Source of the DNA: Thalia democratica
Taxonomy: Eukaryota
DNA: 64,000 nt
Direction of reading: 5' to 3'
NCBI GenBank assembly: GCA_965202585.1
Contig: OZ241833.1
Location: forward strand, 30,752,001 to 30,816,000
Both the position numbers and the translations under genes were made by a program. Shown here in pieces: positions 39,601 to 64,000 of this stretch. How positions within the stretch are numbered: the stretch's first letter is position 1; each line of letters begins with the position of its first letter. The notes under the pieces were generated by a model, which had not been told where the DNA came from, ran no database searches, and was given only the letters and a program-made list of their open reading frames with translations.

Positions 39601-42600
39601 CCGATCTCCAGCACGATCTCTTTCCAAGTGGACCCGAAGTCTCCCTGGATCTCGGCCATCAGGGAGGACACTCCTTCTTCGAACATCACGACCTCCAGCG
39701 TGCCCGGCGAGGATCCGGTCTGGTAAATCCAGAAGTGAAGCTGTAAGTAAAAGTGTGTGAAAATGTTTTAATTGGGATTAGTTTTAAGCTTTCAAACGGG
39801 TTTAAGTTTATGCAAGACTGTTGAGCGCGTGCCCTCGTTTTATTTAAACTTTTCGTTTGTGGCTAAACCGGTTTAACTAAAGAGCGGAAGCTGTAAGTTT
39901 ATGGATGTTTTTAACCAAACATAAGTTTTGTTTGCATATACACATAAGCTTAACATTATCGAATGTCAATTCTCATTTTATTCAAAGCTAATCCGTCATG
40001 ATCAAAGCTAAAGCTTAAAAATGAATGCAACGTTTGTACATTTCAATGAAACAATGAATTTTTTTTTGTGAATTTAAGAAATTTGTTACCTGGCAGGTTG
40101 GATGTGCGTAGTTGAACATGGGGCTGTCCAGCCTTGCCGCTTGCTGCGCGTAAGACACGATCCCCTTGTTGATGTAGAAGTAGTGTCCCGAAGATCCGCT
40201 CGTCGTGTGGTCGGATGTTGGCGATAACCTGGTGTGTTTGTTTGTTTTAAATAGTGGATGAGTACTTGATAATTTGTATTAAGTTTTAAATTTAATGCAG
40301 TCTGAACATGTTGTTTTATTTCTAAAAATGTTCACAAACCGATATTTGCATTCTAAAGCTTATAAGTTTTTTAAAATATTTTTAGTACATTCTTTTAAAT
40401 TATATTTCAAATCTTTGCATATTTTTTATTATTTTGATTTAAAACGTACCACGTCGTTATTAAGTTTGACTTTTTGTTTTAAACCATAAATTTGTTTATG
40501 TACAAAGTCGATTTATTAAAGAAAATATTTAAAACACAATCAAACCAACCCAGGATCGGCGTCTTTTCTGTCGGTGGCGACCCAATTAAAATCGTCGTTA
40601 GAGGTCGCTATTGACTCCTCCCATCCGCAGATTCCCCCGAATAAGTTCACAGGTTCGTCTTCCAAAGTGCAAGTTGCAGCTGTACAAAATGTTTGATAGT
40701 TTTGAATGTTTTGAAGTTTAAAACAATTATTGGTCGGGACTTTCAAATTTTCAAGTTATTTATTGTTTAGCTGTTAGGTAAAAGACATTAATGAAAAAAC
40801 TTCTAGTATTCCAAAAAAATGAAGTTAAAATTTAAAATATTTAGCACATAAAACTATTTCCAAAATACTATTTTTTTCTCTTGTAAAAATTATATTAAAA
40901 ATACTTTTTTGCTACACTTTAATACTAATAAAAGTGTAAATTAACTATACCATTGGAAAACCAGTGGGAAACAAATTCCGACCTTGACAAACATTAACAA
41001 ATTAGTAAATTTTTACACTTAAAAGACAATTTAACATAGAAGTACTAACGGCATTCTGTTTCATCGGATTTATCCGCGCAATCGAAAGTGAAGTCGCACT
41101 TCTTGTTGATGTCTATGCACACACCCGAAGACGGGTCGAACCCACAATAAAAACTCTGGGGCCCGCAAGGGGGTTGCGTGGGGTTTCCTCCCGTTCCCGG
41201 GTCGACGTTCGCCGATTTTACGCAACCTGAAAAAAATTAGTAAACTTTCAAAAATTTACCACTTTCAATCAAACAGTGTTTGTAAAAGCTTTTTAAACAG
41301 TGTTATTGAGTTGTGTTACTGGTTTGCTTAGTGGTAGTCATTTGTAAACTCTATAACAAGCTGTATCTCAAGTTAATCGTTAAAAATCACTTGAAAAAAG
41401 TTTAGTCAGATATACAAAGCTACCCTTATACCCTTAAAACTTTGTAGCATCAACAACAAAACAAAGTTAGCTTTTTCTAACCTTCACTGAAGGAAACGTC
41501 GTCAATGGCAATCACCCCGAAATTTTCCCCTTGAACGAGACCCTTCACTGTGACCTGGTAGTCAGTGGTTACGCCAGAGGGATCAATCAGAACACTCTGC
41601 CGGGTCCACTTCTGGGTCTGGTCCGCCATGACGGTCGCCTTTACCTGTTTCTGGCCACCGTCGCTAGGCAACACCGAGACCCTGAGGTACTGAACCGAGG
41701 AACCTTCAACGTAGGTGTAGAACCTGTAGAGTTTAAAAATAATTTAGTTCAGCTTATTGTGATTACTTTGATCATATGGTTGTATAATGGAATAAAAGAG
41801 ATTAAAAGTTTATTTTATTCTTAGAGCAAAAGTTTTTAGTAAATTTGTCAAGTTTAGTTATTGCATAAAAATGCAGTGTTTGTTTTTTTGTCAATTTTTT
41901 TTTTTTTTGATCTATTTTTATAGTTTGAAATAATAGCCAGTTCACTATACCAAAAACATTTATAGTGTTTATTTCATTGAATTACTTGAACTTTTTAAAT
42001 CATCAATCTCCAAACCTCAAGTAGCAGTTGCTTGATGTAGAGTCGAACAAGGAGCTGACGAGAGTCGCCTCTCCAACTGAGTTTTTATCGAGGTAGGCGT
42101 AATTTCCATTCCTGTTTCCCATCGTATGATCGAAACTTGGCACATTTTCGCTGGCAATTCCCAATTTCCACTCGGATGTTGCTGTTAATGTTCATTATAT
42201 TATTAAAATTAAGTATTAAAAGTACTCCAAGTTTCATAAAAATAGCAAGTAAGATATTAAATGTTTCTAAAATCATTGAATCAAGCTCAGCTCTGGTACT
42301 CAAATACGTTGTAAAATCAGTGTGTTTTTTTGCAAGTTAATAAATTTTATTTTAACTATTTTATAGTCTAGTGGTAGCTTTCTACAATATTCTTTTTTAA
42401 TTAGGACTGTGTTTAACTGTACAAGTTAATGTCAAAAAAACTTTGAGTTATTATCAAGCGAAATCATGTATTTAATTTATTTTTATTTGATTCAACAAAT
42501 ATGTTTTTGCTATGCCATAAACGCACAACAATCTTTTAAAAATTATTAAAACACAAGATTGCAAGCGTTCTTAACAATTTCACACACCTGTGGTTTGTGG

Positions 42601-45600
42601 TTTCTTCCAATCGCAGAAGTCCCTCTCGAAGTTGCACCTGCTGTAGCTGGCGCAGGTGAAGGACTCCTCGTCGGTCTGATCGCAGCAGTCGTAGTTGAAG
42701 TCGCACCAGTTCTCGCCCGGCACGCAGTTGCCGTTTCCGCATCTGAGTGAAATAAAAAGATTTACGTGATAGTTACATGTATTATTGTGAATATAAAAAA
42801 CGCCTAAATTAATGAAGTTCTCACTTGACACACAGTTGCCGTTTCCACATTTGAGTAAGAATGTTTTATTTACTGTATATACTGTATTACAATCATCGCA
42901 GTTTATTTCTTATTTTACCAAATTAACTGGTTGTTGTATTACTAAAACAAACACTAAAACTAAAAAAAATTGTATGTATTTTTTCATTCATTGAATTTCG
43001 TTAAAAAGAAAAAGAAACAGTCTTAATTGGTACTACAACATGGTATACATACAGTAACCCAGTTTGACATAAAAACACTTGTTTCTTAGTGTTTCTGGCA
43101 AGAAGGCTTCTCTTGTCTGTTTTTTGCAATTATGTTACATATTTTTTTTTCAACTTACTGTTTCTGGTTGGTAGGGCAGGTTTGAGGCGGGGTGTTCACC
43201 TGGGTATCGTCGGCACATGAAAGGAAGGCCACGTCGTCAATAGCAACCATACCAACCGCGTTGTTAGTTACCTCAACTTGGAAACTCAGCTGTAAATTAA
43301 CAAAGAAATTTTTAGACTTATAAAAAAACAGAACTAGACAATATAAATGTTTGCTTAAAAAAATTAGAATAACTATAGAACAGTACTAGTTTTAAACAAA
43401 AATAAAGACATAAGTACTTAAAGTTTTATACTTAAAATTAATATAAACCTAAGCTGGCTGTTAATATTCAATTTTCTAACGCTAAACTGTTTTCAACTGT
43501 TTTTTATAAATTTCAATTACAAGATAAAATAATCTTTTATCAAAACGCAACCAACCGTGAAGTCCCTCAAACAGGTCTGCAGGTCAACTCTGGCGTATTT
43601 CCAATCCGCGCTCGCGCCCTGCACACTGGCCTGCCAGTACTCCCTTGTCATCGTGCCCGACTTGGTGACCAGGTACACCTGGCCAACTTCACCGTACACG
43701 GAGTAGTAGAACTCGAAGCTGCAGGTCAGTCCCGACTGTTTGTAGGTGGGAGATAATAAGCTGGATACTTTGCCGGTGGATCCCGAAGGGACTTGAAGGA
43801 TCATGAAGGAACCTGAATATATATTTAAAAGTAAGTAAAAAATACTTATAGTTCCTAGTTTAAAATAATTGTTTGTAGTTAAGACAATTGGGATTTTAAG
43901 TCAAATGAAAACAAACGTAAGGTCTTTTTCAGTAGCTATGCTAGTGCATAAGCTATTTTCTGATGCCTAACATCTAGTGAAGTGTGTTGGCGTAAAATTT
44001 TATAAATCTACTACAAAAGTTTATTTTCAAATTGTTTAACCTTTAAAAGTTGTTGATTGGTATAAAAGTTATTTTCCGACCACTGGTATAACACTTTATG
44101 CGTTAAAACATAAATCAACTATGATACATATATTTTTTGTACTTTATAGGAATTTTAATTTTGTTGTTGTTACCTTGAGCACTTTGCAGTGTGTGGTCCG
44201 TCGAGGGTCCGCCCTGGCCAACCGGGTTGCTCTGCGCCCCCGTCTGCTGTTTCCACAGCAACATGCCGTTGTCAGGGTCGTTCTGCCACGCCTGAGTGCA
44301 TCCGGCATCCTCGAAGAAGCATTCGGACGGACAAGAAATTTCGTCAGAACCGTCGCCGCAGTCGTTCTGGTGAAAGGTGAAAAAAAGGTTTAAATTTTGA
44401 CTGGTGTTCTTTGAACAACTTTAAATGTTTTTGCACGTGAAACACACTTTTGTGGTTTTATATGTTACAAAAATAGTCAAAAAACTAAAAAGTAGTCAGA
44501 CACAATTACTTTTAGGAGAATTTTTTACTTTATTTTATTTTTTATAAAAACTGAAGATGAAGTTATACAAAAGTTTATGTTTTTTGAAAAAAAAATTTAT
44601 ACTTAATTTATATTTTATATATTTATCAACAACTTACACTGAAATCGCAGAACTTGGAAGTGTCCAAGCAGTACCCGTTTGTGCACGCCTGCGTGTCTAT
44701 GGGGCAGGGCAGTATCGCGTTGGGGTCCACGTGACAGCTTGGGGAGAGGCTGACGTCATCGATCGTAATAGTTGAGTAACTGTTAGTCATGCTCGATCGC
44801 GTGATTGCTATGACAACCTAAAATTATGGGTGGTTGGTCATAGAGTCTTTTAACGGTCAATTTATATTTGTTTCTATCAAAAAAAGTTTTTTTTAGTTTA
44901 TTTTAAGAACTACTACTAAGACATTGAAAGTATTGTAGGTTAAAATCGGCCCCTGCTATTCTTTAAAATTAAAAAATTCAAGTTTGCTTTGTTTTGCTAA
45001 TGAAAGTTTTAGAAGTTTTATATTTGATAAGCATATCGGTTAACTTTTCTACTTGACAACATAGTTTGTAAAATAAACTTGGAAGTATTGGCTGGATTGA
45101 AGAGGAACAGACTCGAAGTACCAATCGGGGTGATCAGAAGTTAATGTCTTTACAACCTTGTCTCCTCCCGTCTGTTAAACAGAATATATTTAAAGTAAGT
45201 AAATATTTTGTTTTGCTGCAAATTCTTTCATTTTTTTTTGATTATAGTAGTAAAAGTTTAACTTGCCCTTACAGTATAATGTGCTTTTTTTTAGTTCACA
45301 TGTTTATTTTTTTGGCAATTTTTTTTTTTAAACCGGCAATTATTGTCTAATGTAAAATCTAAAAGTACAAACTTTAGTTTATAACCGGCGAGTCTGTTTT
45401 AATTTAAAAAGCAAAAAAACAAAATTGTGTTAGTTACTTATTGATCTAATTTTATTTAATCTCTTGTTTTATCTCACCGCAGTCCTGATGATGATCTGAA
45501 CGGTACCGACGTCTTTAGCATTCATCGTCCTGTAAAACCTGATCTTGCAAGCGTCGTTTTTAACTGGAAGAATCACCGGTCCGTTGATGTAAGCCTAAGT

Positions 45601-48600
45601 TGCAAAAGTTTTTTAATTTAATGATCGTTAACTTGGGTTTATAATTTAATCTAGTTTACTACTATAGTTGTTTAAGTAAATTAGCTAGTTGCTAAAAATG
45701 TCTCGAGCAAGTTATTGCTCAATACTTTTATAGATTTTCTAACTTAATAAAAAGCAAAGTTATTTAACTTTAAAATTCAAAATTTCATAGCTATTTTCAA
45801 CTTATTAAAACATGCTTGCTTCTAATAGTTCATAGAAAATTATTCTATTGACAAAAAATACAAAAAAAAACTTGTACACATAGCAAAATATATCACCGGA
45901 AGTTATAAAAACAAACACTAACCACGGTGTTAACATTGGATGGAGATGATTGCGCGTACAAGTAAGCTCCGTTCACATTATTGTTATGGTCGTTCATTGG
46001 TCCGTTCTGAGATATTCCCCTCTGTATTTGAAGTGTGTTGCTATCATCCAACGTCCACGAGCACAAACCCGTATTGAAGTTGCAAGCTCTGTAAGTTGTT
46101 TACTTTTTGTTTACAAGTATTTAAAAACATAACTGATTGTAGGTATTAAAACTAGTTTAAATAAGCTTTTTCAATCAGCCAACACTTAGAACAAACTACT
46201 ATATTTTTGTTTTAAATTGTTTATTTTTTATTTTATGCTTAAACCATACTTTTTACTTCAAAATGTTTATTTTCTTTTAGTCAACACACTTTCAACTGAC
46301 CTTAATCCTCGCTTTACAAGTAATACTGCAAATGTTTTGACAAGTATCTTATTAGTAAAAATATCAATTCACACTCACTGATAATCGGGACACATTTCGT
46401 CGCTGCCATCGCTGCAGTCTTCAACGAAATCGCACTGAGAATCCAGCGACACGCAGCTCCCATCGCTGACGCACTGCCATTGGTCGAAACCGCAGTTTCC
46501 GCCGCCGCCGCCCGAGGGCGTGCCGGAGTTGCAGTTAGTGAACGTGATATCGTCCACCGCGATGTTGGCTGCAAAATAGATTTTGCTTTTTTAAAAAAAA
46601 TTTGCTTTGTATAGATTTATTGGTAGTTTCAAAGTCTAGGTTGTGCTTGACTTATTACAACTATAAAGAAGCTTTTATAATTTCGGCAAAAAATTAATAT
46701 TTTTGACAGTTATTTAAAAGTTATGACTTTTAAGTTGTTTTGAATTAAACCTACTGCTAACTTTTCAAAAAAAAGACCTCTTTTAATTTTTACAAAGATT
46801 TAGCTTTGAAAAGCTTCTATAAGTTTGACAAAAAAAAATGAAAATAATTAAATCTTAAAGAAAAGTTTGAGACATTTTAAAACTTAATATGTCATAACTT
46901 CTTAATTTAACGAAAGTAAGTAAACGCTTCTGTTACAGTTCAAAACAGACACATTTTTATCAACAAAAAAAACCTCCAGAGTTTCCGTGGTAGGCTTCGA
47001 ACACGAGTATCCACCCGAAGTCCTGGGATCCCACCTGAACTCCCGCGTTCGTCCACTGGTTGCCAGTCGGTTGCGTCATCTCCCACACTTTCTGTTGTTT
47101 GAAGATGCGTTTGTTTAATTCTCAATGTTAAAATATAAACTTATTGGTGAATTTTACAGTTTCGAAAATTTTTATGGATACATAAACTACGCAAAAATAA
47201 AAAAAATTTCTACTGTAATTTTTTTATTTAATACACCGAGTCAAGTTAGAAGATTGGAATCTGTAGAATTTGTTAGTGTTTAAAATACTATTAATTTTCC
47301 TTTAACTAGTTTGTGAAGTAAACTTAACAATTTCTTTCAGTAGCTAAATTCATATATAAAGTTTTTGTATTTTGGAACAAGTTTTACTAACTTAAGCAGA
47401 GTTGTTGGATTTTTCAAATATTCCATTAAAAAGGACTAATCAACCAAAGTGTTTAAAAACGTGTTTAGTTTTAAAAACATAAACAAAATTTTTATATGTT
47501 AAAAAAATATTAACACTAACAGACGAAGTGTCAGTTCCTGACAACAGCAGCGACAGTTTCGCGTCGAAACTTTGAGAACCGGAACTCTGGTACATGTAGT
47601 ACCAGAACGACACCTGGCAGGACGTGGCAGCCCTGCCCAAAAGCGGGCTGGTCAGGTGGGCGTAGTTCATGAAGTCCCCTTGGCCCGGGTCGACGAACAT
47701 GTAGTAGCCTGTGGTGTGGACAGTTAGTTTGTTGTTGTGTCAATGCTATGACGTGATACTATAATATATTTTGTTACGGCTTTATATGTTACGGCAATAT
47801 ATAATAATGCCGTAACAGTCGGCTTGTGAATAAATAAATATGGATAAATATACAAATTATGTATACTTCTTATACTCTTTAAAAAAACACGAAACGCTTC
47901 TTAATTTTATTGTTGTGTTGTTTTATTTTTTAAATATATATTTTTACAAATATTGAAAAGTTCAACGCTCGTTACAGTTCAAGGTGACAAAAATCATTCA
48001 GTTGATAAAAAACAGCATAAAAATGTTTCATTAACGAGTGATGATATAACTAAAGAACTATAAAACAAAAGTTTAACGTTTTAAATGATTATTTAAGTCT
48101 ATAAATTTCATGTCTTTAGTAGAAAATTTTTTATGCACAGATAAACAGGAAGAATTTCCACAATCAGATTAGTAACTTAATCGTTATTTATTTTTTTACA
48201 AACCGCTTCCTGAAGTGTGGTCGCCGTTCGGTCCGCTCGTAGTAGGGGAACTCCCCACACCGGATATCCTGTCCCACATGTACAGCCCCGAGCTGTCGTC
48301 ATGCCAACTGCAGGTCCCCAGCTCAAAATCGCACGCCCCGCAATCCACCTCGTCCGCGCCGTTCACACAGTCCTGGAATCCTAAAAATTAAAAAAAATCT
48401 TCAACATTCAGCTTTGCACTGAGGAGTATGAATGTTTCGTACCAGCAATAAACAATTGAGCGAAACACTACCCGTGTAATATGAACCATGTAGTGAAGTT
48501 GATTGGGTGTTAGTAAAACAAAAACTCAAAACTTATTCAGGTATAAACTGTGATAAAAACCTAGTTGTTATAAAGTAATAAACTTTAACTATTGGCACCA

Positions 48601-51600
48601 ATGTATTACCAGATTTTAAAACGAAAACGCTAAAGTTAAATTTATGATCTCGCAAGCAATTGTTCCAAATATATATTTTTTCAAAACGAACCGTCGCATC
48701 TTCGGTCGTTGCTGACGCACGCCCCGTCTCCGCAGTGGAACTGGGAATCCCCGCCTGGGCACGGGGACTGCGTCGTCGTGGCAACCGTGGTGCCGGGCGG
48801 CAACTGGGTCTGGGTGGACAGCCTGCACCCGTCCGTGAGCGAGATGTCGTCGATGGCCAGGTCGCCCAAGTTCGAGTTGGGGGTTTTCCCTTCGATTCTC
48901 AGCTGTAAAGTTGTTTGTTTAGTAAATAAGTTACTAACAATTACTAAAGCACTTTTAAAATTCGTGTTATTTGTTTGAATTAAAACGATCTAAAATTCAA
49001 ACGTAGTTTTCAGCCATTCTAACAACAGGACACATAAAAACTTTTGACAAAACATTCAAATCGGGGAAATCACCTGCCACGGCCTGCCGACTTCGGCGTT
49101 CACTTTGAACCTGGCGGTCCCCCACGCCGATCCCTTGTCGCCCGACTTGGTCCACAGCTTGGTCCACGGGCCGCCGTTCTCGTACCTGAGGTAGACCTTG
49201 AGGGACTTGACGTCCTCGCCGTACATGTGGTAGTTCATCAGCAGCTTGCACGTTTCCACGTTGACGGTTTCCAGCAGCGGGCTCAACAGGCTGGCCAGCT
49301 CGTCTTTGTAAATAAAAATGCAACAGTTAAAATAAACGTTTGTTGCATAATTTGTTTAGAACATATTTTGTTTTATTGTTTACGGTTTTTATAGAAAAAA
49401 ATTATTTAATAATACAAATACTGTTGATTTTAAGTCTGCAAAAAGCTTGCTTCAATTGGCGCAAACAAACTACTTAACTTTACAAAGACAAAGGAAAAGT
49501 TTCGCATTACTAAAATACACCACATGAGTTACTAAAAGTATTTTATCCCCCGCTTAAAGCTCAAACTTTTAGTTTAATAAAAACAACTTACCCGTACCAT
49601 ACGCAGCTTTTGCGTATTTTAAAGTAAATATAAAAAAAAACACTGACTGCTCTTCTGATTTCCCGAATCGAGGAACATGAAGTGGCCGTCCCTGGTGAAG
49701 GTGGTGTGGTCCACGCACGGTCCCGTGTCGGGCCTGCACCTCAGCCCCGACGACCTCGTCCAATCGAACTCGTCCTCGGTCGATTGCGACCAATCGCAGG
49801 CTTCTATTTCGAAGTCGCACCTGGCCGGGTACGCGTCGCAAGCTGTTGGGGAATTTATATAATGTTAGTTACGTCATAATGCTGGAATTTTACAACTCAT
49901 AATGTTCGTTGCAAGTGAGGTTTTGTGCAAAATTTGAAGTATTTTTGATTCTATGTTTAAATTTCAAAATTGCTTACAAACAAAGTAGAAAAACTCATTT
50001 AAGCAATGTCCAAATTTGTGGTTGCATTATGCAAAATCATGAAAAATCTTAGGTAGGTAGTTCTAAACAATCATATTAAACTTGATTTTACATACCTTTT
50101 TAAATAACAAGCATTAAAAAGTGCGACAAATAAGTAGGGCCAACAAAACTGTAATTAATAAGCTTACTGACTTCGTTTAAAGTTTCAGAACTAGATTTAT
50201 AACTAAAGCAAGTTGTAAAAAAACTTCAGAGATAAATAAAAAATTACATGTATGTTACATCCTAGTGAATTAAAACTGATGACAAATTACATTTTTCGTC
50301 GGAAAAGTCGCCGCAGTCGTCAATAAAGTCGCACTTTCTATTTTTCTCGATACATGCTCCGTTGTCGCAAGTAAATTTGTCGTTAGGGCAGGTCGTTTTT
50401 ATTAGCGGTTTTCCGCAGTCGTTGAAAGAGATGTCGTCAATTGCAATGTCACCTAAGAAAATAAAAAATTGATGAGTTTTGATAAATTTAATCTTAATCT
50501 AAAGATTAAAAAACATTTTTTTTTAAGTCCACTAGGAACAAAAGACTGAGTAGAACATAGCTAAGAGTAACAAAAATTCAAATTTTAATTTTTGAAAACT
50601 TAAAAACAATGAGCTACGAAAGTTTGTAGCAAAAATAACAACTCGCTAAGAAAACAATCGAGTTCACGAAGAATCACTTTTTTAGATTTATCAAATAAAC
50701 TGATACATTTACAATACAAAAGTTAATCATGTGGGTATAAATATTTTTTTGTGATATAAAAATAAATAAAAAATTACAAGTGATTACCTAGCACGTCGTA
50801 GCTCCTGATGGCGGAAATGTCGATTTGGAACGGTTTCTCGTTCACGCCGATCGGCACTATCGCCTGCAGCCACTCGTCGGCCTGGTTTCCGACCAATGAG
50901 AACACGATGTTGTCGATCCCGCCAATCAGCTTGCTCACCTGTGCGAAGGAAAAATTTAAAACATACCCGTAAACAAATTATAGAAGATTTTTAATTAATG
51001 GTGATTTATAACGTATTTAAAGACAAAGAGTTAAATTCAAACCACTTTCACTTAAACATTTAAGTTTTTAAACCAAAACTTTAAATATCAAATATTTATC
51101 AATAAGTTCTCTGCCGAGCTTGTTCGGAACAAAACTTCAAACGAAACAAAGTTCCATCAAAAAACTTTGCACGGTGACGAACCTGCAGGGAGCCGATGTG
51201 GTCACCCGACATGTGGTAGTAGAAGGTGACCTCGCATTTGCTTCCGCTAGACGGTATCAGAGGGCTGATGTACCTGGCCCTGCTGCCCGACACGCCGTCG
51301 TCCGCATCCACGTACAAGTATTTGCCGGTACCAGTGGTGTGGTCCGATGTCGGTCCTGTCGGAAGTGTGATGAAAATTATAATGTTTGTTTCAGACTTGT
51401 TGCCACTCGTTCTTTGTGTATTTAATCTTTTCATATGAAAATTGTTGATGTTGGAATTTATCTTGAACTCATACAAAGAACTTGGCTTTTCAATTCTGTT
51501 TTTATTTGAAAACAGGCAGAATTTTAGTGTTAATCAAAATGTTTTATTTCTAGTTCTAGTTTGATCGGTGAAAAAAAATTAAGTAATATTAGTTGTAAAC

Positions 51601-54600
51601 AAAACTAAATTAAAAACCAGTGTTTCCAGTGGAAGTCTGTCCTGACCCGATCACCCATCTGAACAAACCGTCAGAAGAATCGTCGCTCCAGCTGCACGGG
51701 TACGAATCGAAATCGCACTCGTATCTGTGATAAGTTTGAAAGTTGCACGATATGAAGTTACAAGTTTTATGTTTTCAAATACACAGCTAAAACATGAACA
51801 ACATTTTTTTTAAATGTATCTCAAGTGTGATTTTATTTCAATTTAACGCGACTTTAAAGAAACTTAATTGTATGAAATTAGAAAAAAGTTGTTTGCTATG
51901 TTTTTGTATCTTTAGTAAAGTTAGGACTACAACTAATTTAGTTTTGTTTCAGATTCAACCTAATTACAACGAGTTTGACTCAAATAAACTGCGTAAACTG
52001 TTGTTTTGAACAATTTGTATTTTAAAACCAGTAAAATATTTTTTTTAATAAAGTGTCCCAACTATGACGTCACAACGAACCCGCAATCTTGTTCGTCGAC
52101 GTCACCGTTGTCGGGACAGTCCACGGTGAAGTCGCACACCTGGGACTTGCTGATGCACTTTGAAGTTTCCGGGTTGCTTGGGTCGCAGTAGAAGTTGCAT
52201 GGGGACGGGGTGGAGGGGACGTAACCACAGTAACCGTCCGTTACCATGATGTCGTCCAATCCTATGTCGGCTGTTTGAATTCATGGTGTGATTAAACAAA
52301 GTAAGTTTCTAAAATTGATTGATAATACCAGTCTTTAACAGTAGTAATTTAAAATGTGTTTTTAGTACGTACAACTTCCCACATTACAAAATCAACCGAA
52401 TATATAATCATAGCAAGCGGTAGTAAAATTTTAAAACAACCTAAATGTTTTTTAATTAAATTTATCTTTTTAACTTTGAACAAAAAGCTAAAATGAAAAT
52501 AAAACTTGAACCGCAATGTAGAGTTCTGGCGTTCTAAACCAAGTTAATCAGTATTTGTCGATAAGCGTCTTTTAAAATTCATTTTTTTTTACCATAATTT
52601 TTTTAACTCAGGTAAACTAATAGAACTAAGCTGTTAAAAATATTTTCAAATCAAAAACAAAAATTCCCCCAAACCGTAATGCGAGGTTCCGACGTATCCC
52701 TGGATCCTGATGACGTACTCCTCGTTGTCGGTGACGTTGTTGGGGAGATCAACCAAGGCTTCCACCCAAATGTCCCCGTACGTGTCCCTCTCCTCCCACA
52801 ATAAATAATTTTGATCTGAAGACCAGTACTGGTACACCTCCAGTCCGCCCACTTCTTCCGGCTTGTTTGTCTGGTTTTTTATATGAAACATGAGTATTTT
52901 GTATGAAACATGAGTATTTTGTATGAAACATGAGTATTTTGTATGAAAAATGAGTATTTATATGAAACATGAGTATTTTATATGAAACTTGAGTATTTTA
53001 TATGAAATATGAACATTCTGCATCACTAAATCGATCTCCTTTACTTTAACTTTTTAACTCCGTACAGAGCACATTAAGGTGCAGTAAACCTGTTTAAAAG
53101 AGCAAAACTTGGCCAAGTTAATTTAAATACTTATAGTATTTTTTAACCATTTGTTTCAAACCAAGTTGGCTTAATATTCTTTGAATAAAAACTTTGTCAG
53201 TGAGATTTTGTTTTTGTTTACAGGCAAATAGTTCAGTATAAGCAAACTCATTTTTGTATGGAAACTTAGTTTTAAAAATGAGAAATGTTCAAATGCATCA
53301 CACTCAACATCTGATTGCCTTTTTAACTCAGTTCTGACCATAATAATGTAGGATGATTAAATTTAACTTGTTTGTCTGTTTGTTATGAGAATATGAGTGA
53401 CTAAAGGTATTGTTTTTCGATCGTCTCCTCTATTTGTTCATCTTAGTATAAAAGGAAGTGCTGCGGAGTGAAGCGATTGCAAAAATTAAATGATAATTTA
53501 AAAAGTTTTTATACTGGATTTCATTTCACTTTGATCACTTGACTTTAATTGGCCGTAAGGCGAATTGACTTATGAGTCTTTAGATAAACAAGCTTATTTT
53601 AAATTCAAACAAAACTAACATATATGTTGTAGAAGAACTGTAGACATCTTGGCGTGGACCCATCAAATCTTACTGAGAACAATCTCGTCATGTCTCCATA
53701 GTTTTGCGGATCGGACGCTTCCAAAAGTAAGTATGTTCCTGTAAGTATTAATAAAAGCTTAAAAACTATTTTTTACACATCAAGTTTTTATTAAGGGACA
53801 AAATCAAACTTTACAGCGCTTGTTTTCTTATAAAAATTAAAAACTTTAAAGAATTTTTTTGTTTTTATAAAGCTATCTCAAAATTAGGCTGTTAACAATA
53901 GAGTAACTAAAACACTGGTGATAAAACCGGTTGACAAAATGAATAAAAATTTTATTAAAATTTTTATCCACGACTGGTTATAACTAAAGTATAGAAGACA
54001 GTTAATATTGTTCGGTAACCCCCCTAAACAACAACTTACCGTAGGGGGTGCCGAAGGTGTGGTCAGTCGAGGGTCCGGTGTTAGAGGACATGGTCTCGCC
54101 TTGAGCCAGCAGCCAATCAAAATCGTCCGTTTCCTCCGAGTTCTGCCACGTGCACAGGCCGTTCTCGAAATCGCAGCTTCCCAACGGCGGGCATTTCCCC
54201 GGAACGATGGTGACGTCGTCGAGGGCAATGTGGTAGTCCGAACCAATCGCGGCTTCGAACACGACCTGTGAAGGGAGGTTGTTCGATCGTCAAACAAGTT
54301 TAGTAAGTTGTTAAAATGATTAGTTTAAATTGAAAGTTGAAAGATGCTTGCAAGCCAATGGGCATCACCCGTGTGATAGATGAATTCCCATCTAGATTTT
54401 GCAACGAAGTTTTATGAAAAAAAAACAAGGTTTTTACTTGAGAAACTTAATTTTTGAGGTTACAAAGTATAGTTAGTAAATGCATATAATAAGTACTACG
54501 TTTCGTGTACTCTGTGAAATTTAGACAACTTCTTCAAAAATTTAAACAGAGTTTTGTGTTTCAACCAACCTTGAAAGAAGTGAACGTGCTGATTGAAACT

Positions 54601-57600: not shown

Positions 57601-60600
57601 GTCCTTGTGCGTCTGCCAGGGTACAGTCGTGGTGGGTGGGCCGGATGTTGGGCAAGCGGTTGGAACGACCACGATGTCGTCCAAGGCTATGTGGCCGGTG
57701 CCCTGCTGTCCACTGGATGCTGTTTGCGCTGTACAAACAATTGATGAGCTTAATGATAATTCATTTTTCATAGAAGTTTTTGTGTAAAATTGTTTTTTAT
57801 AATTTTTTTGTTTATCTTTTGTTGAAAAAATTTGTTTATAAAGCAAATAGCGCTCAAATCAATAAAAAAACGTTGTAAGACTACTTAGAACTTTGCAAAA
57901 ACTTTGTGTGACCGTAAACTTTTATAAACTTTCAACTGGTTGGCAATCTACAGCTTCTCAGTTAAAGAATAAACAAAACAAACAGTTCCACCAACAAACC
58001 TTCAAAAATGATCCAGAAACTTTCCGCTTGGCTGAACTGCAGCTGCTGCATCTTCCACACGTTGCCCTGACTACCGATCTTCTGCCACTGGGAGGCTGAG
58101 GGGTTGGGGCTGGACTGCGTTGCCACTGACAACTTGAGAGTGCCTACCCCTTCGCCGTACATGTGGTAGTAGAATGTTATGCACCTGAAACGAGGGTTAA
58201 GTTTAAAAACTAGAAAAATATCTTGCAAGCTTGATGCGTCGCAGCAAACATTTTGCGGGATTAAAACAAAGTTTATAGTATGGCAACGTTGAGTGAAAAC
58301 AAAATAAAAGTTTTATTTTTTAAAGTTGGGATGAAACTATTTTAAGGTAATAATCTTATATATGAGTTCAACAACGTAATTTTATTAGTTAAATGTAAGA
58401 AGCTTTCAACTCAAAGACAGTTGCATTTAAAACTAGGTTTAAAAAATTAAATTAAAACCTTCTGCTAGAATTACTAATTATATGGTATAATACCTGTCAG
58501 TGATACCGGTGGTTGTGTCAACGGTGAAAACTTCAGACAACAACTTGGATTTACTTCCGCTCGGTCCTGAGCTCATGTCCGCAAAAACCGAGTGACCCTG
58601 GCTCGTGTCTGGGTGTTATTTTATTTTACCTTTTAAATGCTTTTGATTCGTGTGAAAAAGTATCAAAGTTTAAGTAAAAAAACTGACATTAGTTTCCATT
58701 AAAATTTTAAGCTAAGTTTTTGGTTTTCTGTTCGATCGCAAAATAATGGAAACCAAAAATGATAAACCTCTATAGGTTTGGAGCATGCAGCTTTAGCATG
58801 CAAAAGTCAAGTTAGTCAACATTCTGTTTAGAAGTAACTCAACATGGCTGAAGTTTAATGTAAAACATAAAAAAGACTATGTTTGTGTTTGATATAAAAA
58901 TAAACTAACTTAAAATATTTTAAGTGAGTTTTATTGAAATCTCATATTATTACAAAATGTTATAATATTATTTTAATTTATATTCGATATTAGATATATT
59001 AGATAAAAGCACTTAGAAGATAAAAATTCACTAAATTGCTGTCTTGTTTAGCCCACCTAAATGTTAAGTTATCTAAAATGGTTATTAAAAACCTTATATT
59101 ATACTATATTAAGTAATTAAGTAATTATATTATAAGTTATACATGTTTTTTTTATTAAATTGTCACAAGCTCACCATTGATGTGGTCGAATTTTAATTAA
59201 TAGCAAAAATATATTATTATATGTAACTTCATTTGAAGAAACTCAAGTTAATCTTGTTCAAAAAGCTCACCGGTGGTGTGGTCAAACTGGGGGGCGACCT
59301 GCGAGTTGGCCCTGCTGTCCCACAGCCAGTCGAAATCGTCCCCTTTCGCGTTGAAGTAGGTGCAGAGGCCGGCCTCGAAGTCGCAGGTTCCCGGTTTGGG
59401 GCAGCTGCTGTCCAGCATCAGCACGTCGTCTATCGCCACCGAGCCCTGCGTGCTGTCACCTGCCGGAAGAAAAAAAATTGGTAACATGCGGCACTGAAAA
59501 AATAAAGTTGATGGTTTTAGTTGCGCATTGGCATTGTAGTTGTGAGATGTCAGTCACGCTAGATTTTGTTTTATGTGCATGATTAAAAATTTTATCTGTA
59601 ACAAGTAAGCTTTTCTTATCTTCGTAGGTTACAGTTGGAAAATATGGTCGAGTATTCAAGTAAAGACTTTATAAGTTATCATACACCTTGTACTAAATGA
59701 AATTGCATCAATTACAAACTACGCTATTTAGACTTGAAAAAAGCTATTAAGAAGCCACATGGTCACCTTTGTGAGCTTCGAAGGCCACTTACGACGTTGG
59801 GTACATTTCGGCTAACAAAACAAATTTAAATTGTTTACAAACCTCTGTAAGCTTCGAACACAGCGTTGTATTTGTACGCTGAAGGGTACATCTCGGCGTA
59901 CCCCAGCACCCAGGTGTCATCCGAGTTGCTCCCCTGCCTCACGAACGTCACCTGGTTGTGGTCGGTTCCCTGGTCCCTGACCTGCTGCTGAACCTTCAGC
60001 GTTCCCGCGTCGCCGCTCATAGAGTACCAGAACGTCAGGCAGTTGCCGCCTGATAATTTGTAAATAAAGTTAAATAAGTCAATATATTTTAACATTGATG
60101 GTGATAACGTAATAAAGAAGATAATTTAATTTATTTTGAATAATTTATTAAACCTTTAGTAGGAATGATTTTGAGCATTTAATTGGCTAGTTTTTTTGTA
60201 CATGCTAGTTGACTTTTTCAAAAAACCTAATTAATCAACTATTAATCAACCATTATAGACATACTTTGATAGATGAGTAACTTAAAAAAGACATAAAGTG
60301 TAAAAAAATAAATACAAAACAATGAAATCTCACCGAGACAGTTGCCCCAGTATCCGACGTACTCCGACGTCGTGGAGCACCAGGGCCTGTCATGGTCCTC
60401 GTATATGCACGTCCAGTGCTGTACCCCGTTGTAAGTGAAGGGGAAGGCGCATGGTAGGGAATTTCCCGTGCCCCCGGTGGTGTACACAATACCGCGCGCA
60501 CCGCACTGGAGCCAATCACCGTCGTATATCGGGTCCACGGAGCACCACGGCTCGCCGTTGTTGTTCACCGTCGTGCACTCGTAGTACGTCACGTTCTGTG

Positions 60601-63600
60601 TGAAAAAGGAGATTTTTTTTTGTTGAACTCGTTTTTAGTCGATTGTTGTTTTGAAACAAATGTTGAAAGGATTTATACTAACTTGATTGTAGGATGGCTA
60701 TTTATTACACTTTAACAATTTTAAAATCAATTTCTTGAGATTTTGTTAGTTCTTTTACCTAATCTTCGAAACACACACAAAGGTTTAAAGCTGATTTGTA
60801 GACAAACCGCATGAATTATTTATTTTTATGACCACCAAATCGAGGAAATTTAAATATATAGAAAAATTAAAGTTCCATACCTGGTAAACAAACGGGAATG
60901 AGCAGGAAGCTTCCTGGGCGGTAATGTACTCACGTGACTTCAAAGCGGCTTTTCCGCCAGATGGCGCCTCGTTGGGGTCGGCGAATGCGAACTGGCCTAA
61001 AGAGGCTCCTGTCGTGTGGTCGGTGGTCGGACCCGTTCCGTAGTTGGGGCTTCCTGTGATACAGTGTTTGCTTAAAAATAATTTAACAGCAAAAAAAACA
61101 AGAAAAAACAAAAATTTTTCAAAGATATATTGCAGATATTATTTAGTAAAAATGCACATAAATATGATTACAAATCTATTTTGCCATTTTATTTGAAGCA
61201 ACGACGTAACATTCAAGTTACCAGTTTAAACTAGTTTAAACCACATTAACAACAATAATTTTCTAAAAGTAACACGCGTCTGAAAATTAAACCACTTGCT
61301 AAGGCACACACAAGTATGCATTTATGTAAAGCATCTAAAACAAATCTGAATAAATTTTCCCAACCTTGACTGCCGACCTTCCACTGGTAGTCGCCGACGT
61401 TGGCGAAGTTGCACAGCCCCTGCTCGAAATCGCACGCGTCCTTGTCTCCGGGATCCCCCTCGCAGTAGCCGTCGGAGAACGTGACGTCATCGACGCTCAC
61501 GTCACCGTTCCAGCTTCCGGTCTTGGTGACGCGGAAGGCGAGTTTGTAGGCGGAAGTGGGGTTGGAGTAGTGGACGATGCCTGGCAGCCACAAGTCCTTC
61601 GAGCCGCTCGACGTTTTCGCGATCTGTGCGACGATTGATTTTTAAACTTGACGGGGTCGAGACTGCACTTGTATGAACTTTTCTTTTTAGTTTTGTTGAA
61701 AATTAAAAGTTGTGACGAAAATATAATTGTTTGTAATACAACAGTAGTACTTTTTAATATAAAGTAGTAGTAAAAACCGTGGTAAAAATAGGTAAAATAA
61801 CAAATGTTAAAAGTAAGAAATGAAAATAAAGCAACAGAAAAGCTTCGTTAATATATAATAGATTATTCTAATACTTCTAGCTACCAACTCGCTTTTGTAT
61901 TGTTTAAACCCTAGGCTACTTATCATATATTGATAAATACATTGTTATCCGTTTTTACAGCATCAATTTCTTTTAAGCTTTTAACATTTTTTTGAGTTAA
62001 GAAGTGATTCTAGTATACTAGAAAAAATATTTAATGTTCATATATCAAGCTTGAATAACTAACAACTAGCTCCTGCATTGAGTTCTCGTCAATCGCCACA
62101 ACTTCGAACGTTCCGATGTTGGAGCCGTACAGGTGGTAGAAGAACCTCATGCAGAACCCCTGGGTTGTGGTTTGGGGAAAGTACCTGGAAGTGATCAAGC
62201 GTGACGTCGTTCCCGCGCTCAATCCGTCGAAGTGCATGTAGTATCCTGGAGGTTAAACGTAAAATGTTTTAAAGTATGTTGATAAATTAATTAACAATCG
62301 GACCTATATCTAGCAAGTTTTATTTTCTTTTAATTTTCGACTTTGTTATTTTTTCGCTTGACTAAATAAATTTTGAAAGTTGATAACGGTAAATTACAAA
62401 AAGGTTGATGTTTAGTAACGTTCAGTGTAAATAACTACTGATATTTCCATAAACATTAGCTAAAAAACTATTCTATTTAAAGTTTTGCGTATAGTAACAT
62501 AAAAATGTCTTTAAACATTTACAATTATTTTAAATTGCTTTACCTTTCAAAATAATTCAACATTATTTTAAGACAAATTAACCTGTATCAATGGTGGCGA
62601 CCAGTGACACTGGACCATTGTGCAGCGGCTTGTACTTGCAGTCGAACCACGTTGGAATTTCTGTCTGGTCCCTGACCTTCATCGTGACCATCGTCCAAGC
62701 GTCGCGCGCATCTGTGTTGTTTGATTGTTATTTGTTTTGTGGATTTTTTCAAACGTTTCAAAATTGGAAGAAAAAAAGTAAAAGTTGTTAGATAAAATTA
62801 GTTTAATGACTTTATACGTAGAATTTAAGTTTTTGTCTGGATTATTTTGAAACTATCTCCTTACAAACAGCCTTTTCTTTCAATAAATTTAAACAAGTTA
62901 ACATAAAATTTAAAAAAATAAGAAAACAAACTGATCCTGATGGGGCAGTCGTCACCGCCTGCTCCCAGGCTCTCCATGAAAGCCACGTCCGAATCAGTGA
63001 AGTACAACCCCTCGGCAGCGTCCTGGACGGCCATTATTATGATTGACTCATACTCCACCTCTTCGTCCAAAAACTTGATCATTGCTTCCACCTAACGAAT
63101 AAAAATATTTGAAATTATCCATATCAGCAAAGATAAATTTTCATTTTTTCAAACAAAAAAAGCTGTATTTTTTGTATGATATGGTGTGTGTTTAAAATTT
63201 GATTCAACAAGTACATGTTGTCAAAAAATAAATATTACACGGTTAATTTCTGGTACCTTGGTCAACCGAACAATACTAAACTAACTAGCTCTTTTTTTGA
63301 GGATTTTGTATGTTATTGCGTGCTTTCGAAATTAAATGAAAATAAAATTTAAAGCTAAACATCAACAACCAAAACAAAAAAAATCTTATTTCAAACCCCA
63401 GCAGAAGTGACGTAATCATCTGTCTGCCAGGTATCGAAAGCCTTCGAGACGATGGTGTCTTTTACGGGATTGATCACCACAATATTATGCCCCCTAGTGT
63501 TCTTGCACAGGTCGTTTCCGTTCACCTCGATTATACAGTAGTTTCCGTCCTCGTATCCGGCCGATTCCGATTTTACGTGCCACGTGTCTGGATAATATAT

Positions 63601-64000
63601 TGGAGTTAGTTTAAATTCAACTGTCTCAAAATCTTGTGTTGGTAGTGTTACTTGTTTCTTAAACATTGTAATATCTGTGTCTTATTCTACTTACTTAAGT
63701 TGTTGATTTTTAAGTATTTTAGAAATTTTATTAAATTTGAAAATAATATTTATAATTGATGAGTTTTATCTACTGTTGATGCTTCTTGTATATGCTTGCT
63801 TTTGTTTTTGACATACAAAACAACACTTTTCAGCTATTAAAACATGCTCTGTTATAAGTTTTCTTTATTTAATTTGATCGTGTTTCTAAGACTTTTTACA
63901 TTACTTGCAAAAATAAACAACAAATCACAGTCTAAAAAAGCTTTTTCTAACCTGCACCGTTAGTGGTGTGGTCCAGGGAAACCCCCTGATTACTGTCCAC
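27437..64000 (-). CDS. MALRD1: Giant MAM and LDL-receptor class A domain-containing type I membrane protein (MALRD1/Diet1-like) with inserted ILEI and FN2 modules; 5'-partial, 74 exons in window
   Basis: Exons in transcript order: 64000-63952, 63587-63397, 63091-62932, 62711-62583, 62245-62064, 61623-61365, 61053-60881, 60595-60334, 60049-59843, 59459-59271, 58608-58494, 58184-58000, 57728-57563, 57161-56968, 56514-56366, 56137-56045, 55789-55654, 55218-55057, 54694-54570, 54265-54040, 53738-53620, 52870-52675, 52270-52081, 51724-51618, 51355-51183, 50938-50788, 50452-50291, 49842-49648, 49303-49074, 48902-48692, 48380-48204, 47708-47521, 47091-46974, 46568-46379, 46088-45923, 45594-45478, 45171-45079, 44817-44638, 44366-44174, 43812-43556, 43289-43159, 42742-42588, 42181-42016, 41723-41482, 41226-41050, 40679-40550, 40228-40090, 39740-39579, 39331-39115, 38747-38631, 38439-38300, 37951-37784, 37480-37390, 37088-36912, 36722-36665, 36410-36287, 36034-35819, 35516-35385, 35122-35028, 34671-34469, 34075-33866, 33566-33303, 33007-32878, 32536-32386, 32145-32018, 31774-31615, 31328-31175, 30963-30769, 30475-30230, 29996-29785, 29277-29083, 28615-28438, 28019-27932, 27644-27437. 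These sum to 12324 nt (4107 aa + TAA) with consistent phases. Recurrent MAM motifs: CDFE..C.W, GP..DHT, C..F.YHM, IA.DD. Recurrent LDLa motifs: C...CDF..DC.D.SDE. The MAM/LDLa/EGF/TM order matches MALRD1; the symbol is family-level. Confidence 0.92.
27905..27925. repeat. (TA)n microsatellite directly after the TM-exon donor
   Basis: ~10 TA units starting right after gtgagt on the minus strand. Confidence 0.9.
27932..28019 (-). CDS. Transmembrane exon
   Basis: [23 protein letters not shown]; aag/gtgagt boundaries in phase. Confidence 0.88.
28438..29996 (-). CDS. Three membrane-proximal LDLa repeats plus one EGF-like domain
   Basis: [23 protein letters not shown]; [25 protein letters not shown]; [18 protein letters not shown]; [36 protein letters not shown]. 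Confidence 0.88.
30230..52270 (-). CDS. Block of 12 alternating LDLa-MAM units
   Basis: Each MAM (ending IA.DD..F..C) is followed by one LDLa, e.g. [45 protein letters not shown]. Confidence 0.82.
52200..64000 (-). CDS. Block of six consecutive MAM domains with no intervening LDLa
   Basis: IA.DD motif is followed directly by the next C(D/G)FE in exons 61623, 59459, 57728, 55789 and 54265. Confidence 0.8.
52881..53012. repeat. 20-bp minisatellite, ~6.5 copies
   Basis: (a/g)tatgaaacatgagtatttt repeated. Confidence 0.93.
60334..60904 (-). CDS. Two tandem fibronectin type II modules nested in a MAM domain
   Basis: CSFPFVYQ|[23 protein letters not shown] and [24 protein letters not shown] fit the FN2 pattern C.FPF.Y.G..Y..C..WC..W..C. 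Confidence 0.88.
62583..63587 (-). CDS. ILEI/PANDER (FAM3/GG-type) domain, 3 exons, 160 codons, nested in a MAM domain
   Basis: [56 protein letters not shown] matches the RG.N.V..FD..FL..D..LG..RD.W pattern of ILEI/GG domains. Confidence 0.8.

Follow-up and report, generated by a model that had tools for sequence, protein, structure and literature searches.

A predicted ILEI/GG domain, encoded by three exons with phase-1 borders, nested in a MAM repeat of Thalia democratica

We analysed a 64,000-nucleotide (nt) stretch of the Thalia democratica genome (assembly GCA_965202585.1, contig OZ241833.1, positions 30,752,001 to 30,816,000), referred to here as the window. On its minus strand lies a gene encoding a long array of MAM domain repeats, and at the high-numbered end of the window one of these repeats is interrupted by three exons (e1, e2, and e3), whose product is predicted to be a domain of the ILEI/GG family. 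The MAM exons immediately before and after them are called A and B. In the order of transcription, the parts of this repeat are:

63952-64000, minus strand: 3' end of exon A, belonging to the N-terminal third of the MAM domain, recognised by translation and a GT donor; the window edge truncates the exon
63588-63951, minus strand: phase-1 intron between exon A and e1, with GT..AG ends and an RNA depth of zero in two RNA runs, X1 and X2
63397-63587, minus strand: ILEI exon e1, 191 nt, entered in phase 1 and left in phase 0
62932-63091, minus strand: ILEI exon e2, 160 nt, entered in phase 0 and left in phase 1
62583-62711, minus strand: ILEI exon e3, 129 nt, entered and left in phase 1
62064-62245, minus strand: MAM exon B, 182 nt, entered in phase 1, starting with G-YYMHFDG and matching the Pfam MAM profile
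61364-61623, minus strand: next exon, encoding the C-terminal third of the nested MAM domain and the start of the following MAM domain (CDFEQGLC...)

Exon A stops at 63952 after ...SLDHTTNGA and one base, G, of a split Gly/Asp codon, that is, in phase 1. Of the N-terminal MAM half, the window contains only 16 residues, and the remainder is known from three relatives of the locus (L006, L007, and L002, described below). Exon e1 encodes the N-terminal strands (SAGYEDGNY...VNG) and the RGHN motif with Arg32; e2 encodes a helix, the AVQDAA motif with Asp88, LGAGG, and Cys113; and e3 encodes the ARDAW motif with Arg120, Cys142, and the last strand (VSLVATIDT). The initial annotation of this DNA, made from the letters alone, had placed three phase 1-1 exons of 191, 160, and 129 nt between the MAM halves, and translation and splice sites showed this to be exact. 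Together the three exons form a single open frame of 480 nt encoding 160 residues; every one of them has an AG acceptor and a GT donor, and they contain no start or stop codon of their own. The intron phases along A, e1, e2, e3, and B are 1, 0, 1, and 1, and exon A joined straight to exon B (a skip of 480 nt, phase 1-1) stays in frame and yields a canonical MAM domain. The cassette consists of real coding exons rather than a chance open reading frame (ORF).

Transcription was assessed with RNA contigs from X1 and X2, the only runs containing this sequence, both from one marine metatranscriptome sample; the contigs were compared over window positions 59001-64000, and assembler contigs of this kind drop rare isoforms. 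The results showed that the contigs cover the exons, with an intron depth of zero, and carry the joints 62245/62583, 62711/62932, 63091/63397, 61623/62064, and 61052/61364. Contigs ending at 63952 run on for 23 nt that match the start of e1 and not the start of exon B. These 23 nt differ from the window e1 by two changes, which replace Lys6 with Tyr, and the same variant occurs in the Tara metagenome ORFs P0001 and P0002. All four inclusion junctions of A-e1-e2-e3-B are present in the contigs, and this chain therefore exists as mRNA, either in a close relative of the sequenced animal or from a different allele. The depth at the cassette junctions was 52-70, compared with 34-62 at the neighbouring constitutive ones. 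At 62337 and 63161, a few contigs of X1 pass from exon into intron and then diverge; they support no alternative exon and are probably unspliced or variant molecules.

The same contigs bear on whether e1 to e3 could belong to a gene of their own within a MAM intron, or be a dead relic outside the MAM protein. Either would be a possibility beforehand, and the intron-sized gaps would permit it. However, RNA contigs link exon A to e1 and e3 to exon B, the three exons have neither start nor stop codon, and the order MAM-ILEI-MAM and its phases are kept in two distantly related Tara Oceans metagenome contigs (L001 and L002) despite saturated synonymous divergence, so that we find this explanation hardly credible. 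As a candidate, the separate nested gene was rejected, being ruled out by the junction-spanning RNA contigs.

The initial annotation had also proposed that splicing could switch the module on or off. The three exons would then be a regulated alternative cassette, skipped in certain tissues or stages to leave a plain MAM domain and included to give a lectin-bearing one. Skipping the 480 nt would indeed preserve the frame and a canonical MAM, sibling repeats function with only an intron at that site, and rare isoforms are invisible in assembler contigs. However, no skipped A-to-B joint (63952->62245) was found among the X1 and X2 contigs, from which the assembler drops rare isoforms; both runs show the included form only, the contigs at 63952 all enter e1, and the cassette junctions match or exceed their neighbours in depth. 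An in-frame skip is thus possible on paper, but of the two junctions that the initial annotation set against each other, only the 63952->63587 type was seen in contigs. With inclusion alone in the RNA and cassette depths not below those of the neighbours, the on/off switch is unsupported, and inclusion appears to be the default splice form and is probably constitutive. Together with the selection on the module and the gene structure in Styela clava, both given below, these results make regulated skipping improbable.

For the identity of the insert, single exons gave collinear matches to the Pfam ILEI profile (PF15711) that stayed below its cut-off of 27 bits. Exon e1 matched positions 1-27 (E 0.005, 17.7 bits) and e2 positions 31-70 (E 0.048, 14.6 bits), and e3 alone had no Pfam match. 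A profile of e1 and three metagenomic orthologues, searched against 1.84 billion representative proteins, returned 295 proteins at E<=0.001. Among the best 150 of these 295, the best long ones carry PF15711 at E 1e-13 to 1e-128, and the e1 profile matched down to E 1e-21, on proteins with PF15711 at E 5e-51. The spliced insert aligned with its relatives over residues 2-157 of 160, that is, as a whole domain and not a fragment, and scored 137 bits against a profile of ten diverse relatives (A4). Profile A4 in turn matched the solved structures of the POMGnT1 stem, FAM3B, FAM3A, FAM3C (ILEI), and the TMEM2 ectodomain at E 2e-22 to 6e-17. The full-domain profile was decisive here, as a PDB search with the e1 profile alone gave nothing significant (FAM3A at E 1.2). 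The collinear exon matches and the full-domain profiles bear out the ILEI identity proposed at the outset, although single exons are sub-threshold, and on these alignments the cassette corresponds to one complete ILEI/GG domain with no more than 2-3 linker residues at each end.

The insertion point within the MAM domain was located with the Pfam MAM profile (PF00629). Exon B corresponds to profile positions 44-99 (29.0 bits, against a cut-off of 26.4) and the exon at 61623-61364 to positions 107-157 (31.6 bits), and a sibling exon ending at the equivalent phase-1 Gly covers positions 1-44. By this alignment the ILEI insert falls between MAM positions 43 and 44, with zero MAM residues lost or duplicated. 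In four sibling MAM repeats of the gene, a phase-1 intron interrupts the Gly codon that follows DHT, with exon ends at 59271, 54040, 48204, and 44174; this had been noticed correctly from the sequence, with coordinates (59270, 54039, 48203, and 44173) that were one base off. About ten further MAM repeats in the window lack an intron at that site. The spacing from DHT to Gly differs by 2-3 residues among the MAM repeats of the gene, which suggests that this segment may be a loop. Upstream of the window edge, L006 and L007, which are near-identical relatives of the window locus, extend exon A as ...DGDWVRQTG...DHTTNGA-G ahead of e1, and the N-terminal half in L002 matches a sibling MAM domain at a BLASTP E of 4e-6.

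The nested arrangement was also found in relatives, where the initial annotation had suggested looking for MAM(ILEI) architectures. In L001 and L002, an exon for the N-terminal MAM half (CTFETGLCDW...SSNDHTTLAS-G) is followed by e1, e2, and e3, then by G-YYMHFDG and the rest of the MAM domain, in the same order and with the same phases as in the window. Their exons measure 179 nt (e1), 160 nt (e2), and 129 nt (e3), and their introns 52-138 nt. At the protein level the insert is 64% identical to that of the window. Synonymous sites are saturated in this comparison, whereas the nonsynonymous divergence (dN) of the ILEI part is 0.28 and that of the MAM exon 0.35; compared with the window, the genomic contig L003 gave an omega of 0.11. 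Saturated synonymous sites together with low dN indicate that the nested MAM(ILEI) arrangement is old and under purifying selection. Purifying selection on the module, as strong as on the MAM exon and acting across species with saturated synonymous sites, is a further point against an on/off cassette. Within L003, at 141-476, e1 and e2 form a single exon without the phase-0 intron, and the intron between e2 and e3 is retained; the internal phase-0 intron between e1 and e2 was therefore lost or gained within the group. Codon composition differs very strongly among these relatives, which have the gene structure in common: the GC content at third codon positions of the orthologous coding sequence was 0.70 (window), 0.92 (L003), and 0.29 (L001).

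Other searches returned ILEI sequences of different context. A phmmer search with five in-frame MAM fragments of the window detected no MAM domain in 151 ILEI proteins, taken from the best 150 of the 295 matches. Scanning the metagenome contig collection with e1 and with an e2 alignment yielded no spliced cDNA locus, a word-indexed protein search with the e1 ORF gave three genomic ORF fragments only, and an exon-tiled alignment search recovered a collagen-ILEI family and ORF fragments, with no MAM-ILEI cDNA. No description of an ILEI domain nested in a MAM domain was found in a literature search. Both domains are known, and the arrangement of one inside the other is new.

The origin of the module was examined through a gene of Styela clava, LOC120341046 (XP_039265410), whose product is the closest named relative that the insert has (43% identical across 159 residues). 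This product is a secreted protein with a signal peptide, a short collagen region, an F5/8 type C (discoidin) domain, and ILEI; it has no MAM domain, and its ILEI follows the discoidin domain in series and is not nested. We rebuilt the exon chain of this gene on L005 (OZ123525.1, 18147359-18158699). The results showed ILEI exons of 188, 157, and 129 nt with phases 1, 0, 1, and 1, compared with 191, 160, and 129 nt in the window and 179, 160, and 129 nt in L001, so that the last exon is identical in length. A search with the Styela ILEI region returned a self-match only. In the same gene, the F5/8C exons measure 156, 161, and 145 nt, and F5/8C and ILEI are both bounded by phase-1 introns, that is, both are class 1-1 modules. 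Genomic ORF fragments of a third type of protein, with a collagen stalk, a neck, and ILEI, break at the same points as the ILEI exons of the window. Several tunicate or plankton genes thus contain an ILEI unit of three exons, bordered by phase 1 on either side.

Because the same module occurs in an unrelated gene of Styela, with the same three-exon layout, and a matching phase-1 intron is present at the recipient site in four sibling repeats, the exon shuffling that the initial annotation had postulated is well supported. In the proposed course, an ILEI module that already consisted of three exons and had phase-1 borders was copied, as genomic DNA, into an existing phase-1 intron within the Gly codon that follows the DHT motif of the MAM repeat, and the intron at 63588-63951 would be the upstream remnant of the receiving intron. 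Since module and receiving intron were both in phase 1, the reading frame and all MAM residues would have been preserved. The phase 1-1 symmetry of the cassette is then explained by its arrival through exon shuffling and cannot be taken as a sign of regulation; the phases are identical in Styela, where the ILEI module is not nested, and this argues against reading them as the mark of a regulated cassette.

Horizontal transfer of the module from bacteria was also considered, because its best non-tunicate matches are Bacteroidota proteins. The searched library, however, is mostly bacterial, and the module has spliceosomal introns in common with Styela. The bacterial matches are proteins of about 1,900 residues with a peptidase C25 (gingipain-like) domain (P0004, P0006, P0012, P0131, and about 30 similar ones), each with a type IX secretion tail and two ILEI domains about 35% identical to the insert. 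They scored above the Styela protein (P0118), which was the sole named animal protein among the source-checked hits, the organism of most hits being unchecked.

For the function of the insert, we focused on residues that bind sugar in a related domain. In POMGnT1, R129, D179, and R207 directly contact beta-GlcNAc (PMC9802357). These three residues correspond to invariant columns of profile A4 and to R32, D88, and R120 of the window insert, and they are also kept in L001. The nearest relatives of the insert are secreted, collectin-like proteins with signal peptide, collagen, neck, and ILEI, and the discoidin-ILEI protein. Because the Arg/Asp/Arg triad is conserved and the relatives have architectures typical of lectins, a glycan-binding head displayed from one MAM repeat would be the most likely role, and we lean towards it, though by no wide measure. 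The lectin-like character proposed in the initial annotation is plausible from these residues, as predicted binding.

The nested ILEI domain could also be real and constitutive while serving as a non-lectin module for protein-protein interaction, signalling, or spacing, as has been proposed for the cytokine-like FAM3 proteins. The first descriptions of FAM3 members presented them as cytokine-like, and how they act is still unsettled (PMC9802357); in the ILEI clade of the insert, moreover, glycan binding is a prediction. On the other hand, the GlcNAc-contact triad is invariant in the window, L001, and the ten diverse relatives, FAM3C and FAM3A themselves bind sugar resins (PMC9802357), and the nearest relatives are collectin-like or discoidin-containing, as is typical of lectins. 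A purely non-lectin role is therefore rather unlikely.

We then compared the locus with known systems. With the ILEI/GG family (FAM3A-D, the POMGnT1 stem, and CEMIP/TMEM2), the insert shares homology across its whole 160 residues, the motifs SAG..G, RGxN, FDT, KD, and RDsWa, and the Arg/Asp/Arg triad. Known ILEI domains occur alone (FAM3), before a catalytic domain (POMGnT1), or in series with G8/PbH1 (TMEM2), whereas that of the window interrupts a second domain. A further difference is a C-terminal extension of the insert, with the cysteine pair Cys113-Cys142; only the tunicate/plankton clade shares this extension. The collagen-neck-ILEI proteins (P0153, P0040/L004, and P0155), which come from marine metatranscriptomes, are 46-50% identical to the insert and share all four cysteines; they lack a MAM domain and carry ILEI as a C-terminal head on a short collagen stalk. 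P0153 is a full-length member of 232 residues. L004 (JGI 3300018893), P0153, P0154, and P0155 have a signal peptide, a short collagen repeat, a coiled-coil neck, and a C-terminal ILEI, and no description of them was found.

The host gene resembles the MALRD1/MAMDC4 type in being a long MAM array, which alternates with LDL-receptor class A (LDLa) modules in the downstream part of the window. To our knowledge, the MAM domains of MALRD1/MAMDC4-type proteins are uninterrupted, and the host gene differs in that its MAM repeats are broken by ILEI and, in the next repeat, by two fibronectin type II (FN2) domains. In integrins, the alpha-I (vWA) domain is inserted in a beta-propeller, so that a ligand-binding domain is shown from a loop of a scaffold. 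MAM(ILEI) may be likened to this in that both connections are at one site; the folds are unrelated, and the likeness would be one of design.

In the explanation that we favour, a shuffled ILEI module is nested in a MAM domain, spliced in, and likely to bind glycans. The MAM beta-sandwich would stay intact, ILEI would form an additional binding head suspended from the DHT-to-Gly loop, the length of which varies, and by its Arg/Asp/Arg triad it would most likely add glycan recognition to one repeat of the array. Taken as a whole, we consider this explanation probable. Several points weigh against it. The N-terminal MAM half lies outside the window, and the reunion of the two MAM halves and the closeness of the ILEI termini are deduced from conservation and expression only. 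The RNA comes from one environmental sample with no defined tissue, and from a close relative or allele (K6Y and about 2-8% nucleotide differences). MAM was absent from the 151 ILEI proteins, and the architecture is seen only in a small group of plankton sequences. As for function, glycan binding is deduced from three conserved residues and the architecture of relatives, and non-lectin roles have also been proposed for FAM3-type domains.

If this explanation is right, one repeat of a very large extracellular protein may have gained sugar recognition. The locus is an unusually clean case of the origin of a nested domain, in that the receiving intron is visible in sister repeats and a donor-type module, with the same phases and similar exon sizes, can still be recognised in a sea squirt, in a different gene. 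Unstudied secreted ILEI/GG proteins of marine chordates, some of them collectin-like, offer test cases for the fold as a general lectin. A more far-reaching and doubtful idea is that the MAM array is a display scaffold in which each repeat bears a different glycan- or matrix-binding loop module and some inserts, ILEI included, might be spliced in or out, giving a combinatorial array for the mucous feeding net, the gut surface, or immunity of a pelagic tunicate. The candidate modules of this kind in the window are the GG-lectin-type ILEI domain and the two FN2 domains of the next repeat.

This next MAM repeat (window 59836-61053, minus strand) has its two FN2 domains at MAM profile positions of about 70-73, just ahead of the CLTFWY strand (Pfam fn2, E 6e-19). 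The FN2 region is spliced in, as shown by the RNA joints 61052/61364, 60595/60881, and 60048/60333. Unlike the ILEI insert, the first FN2 domain lacks an intron at its 5' boundary and begins within a MAM exon. The MAM repeats between about 57 kb and 64 kb are successive, without LDLa modules between them, and further downstream, at 42583-52259 (minus strand), MAM domains alternate with LDLa modules, one of which lies above the Pfam cut-off at 24.6 bits, the others being weaker.

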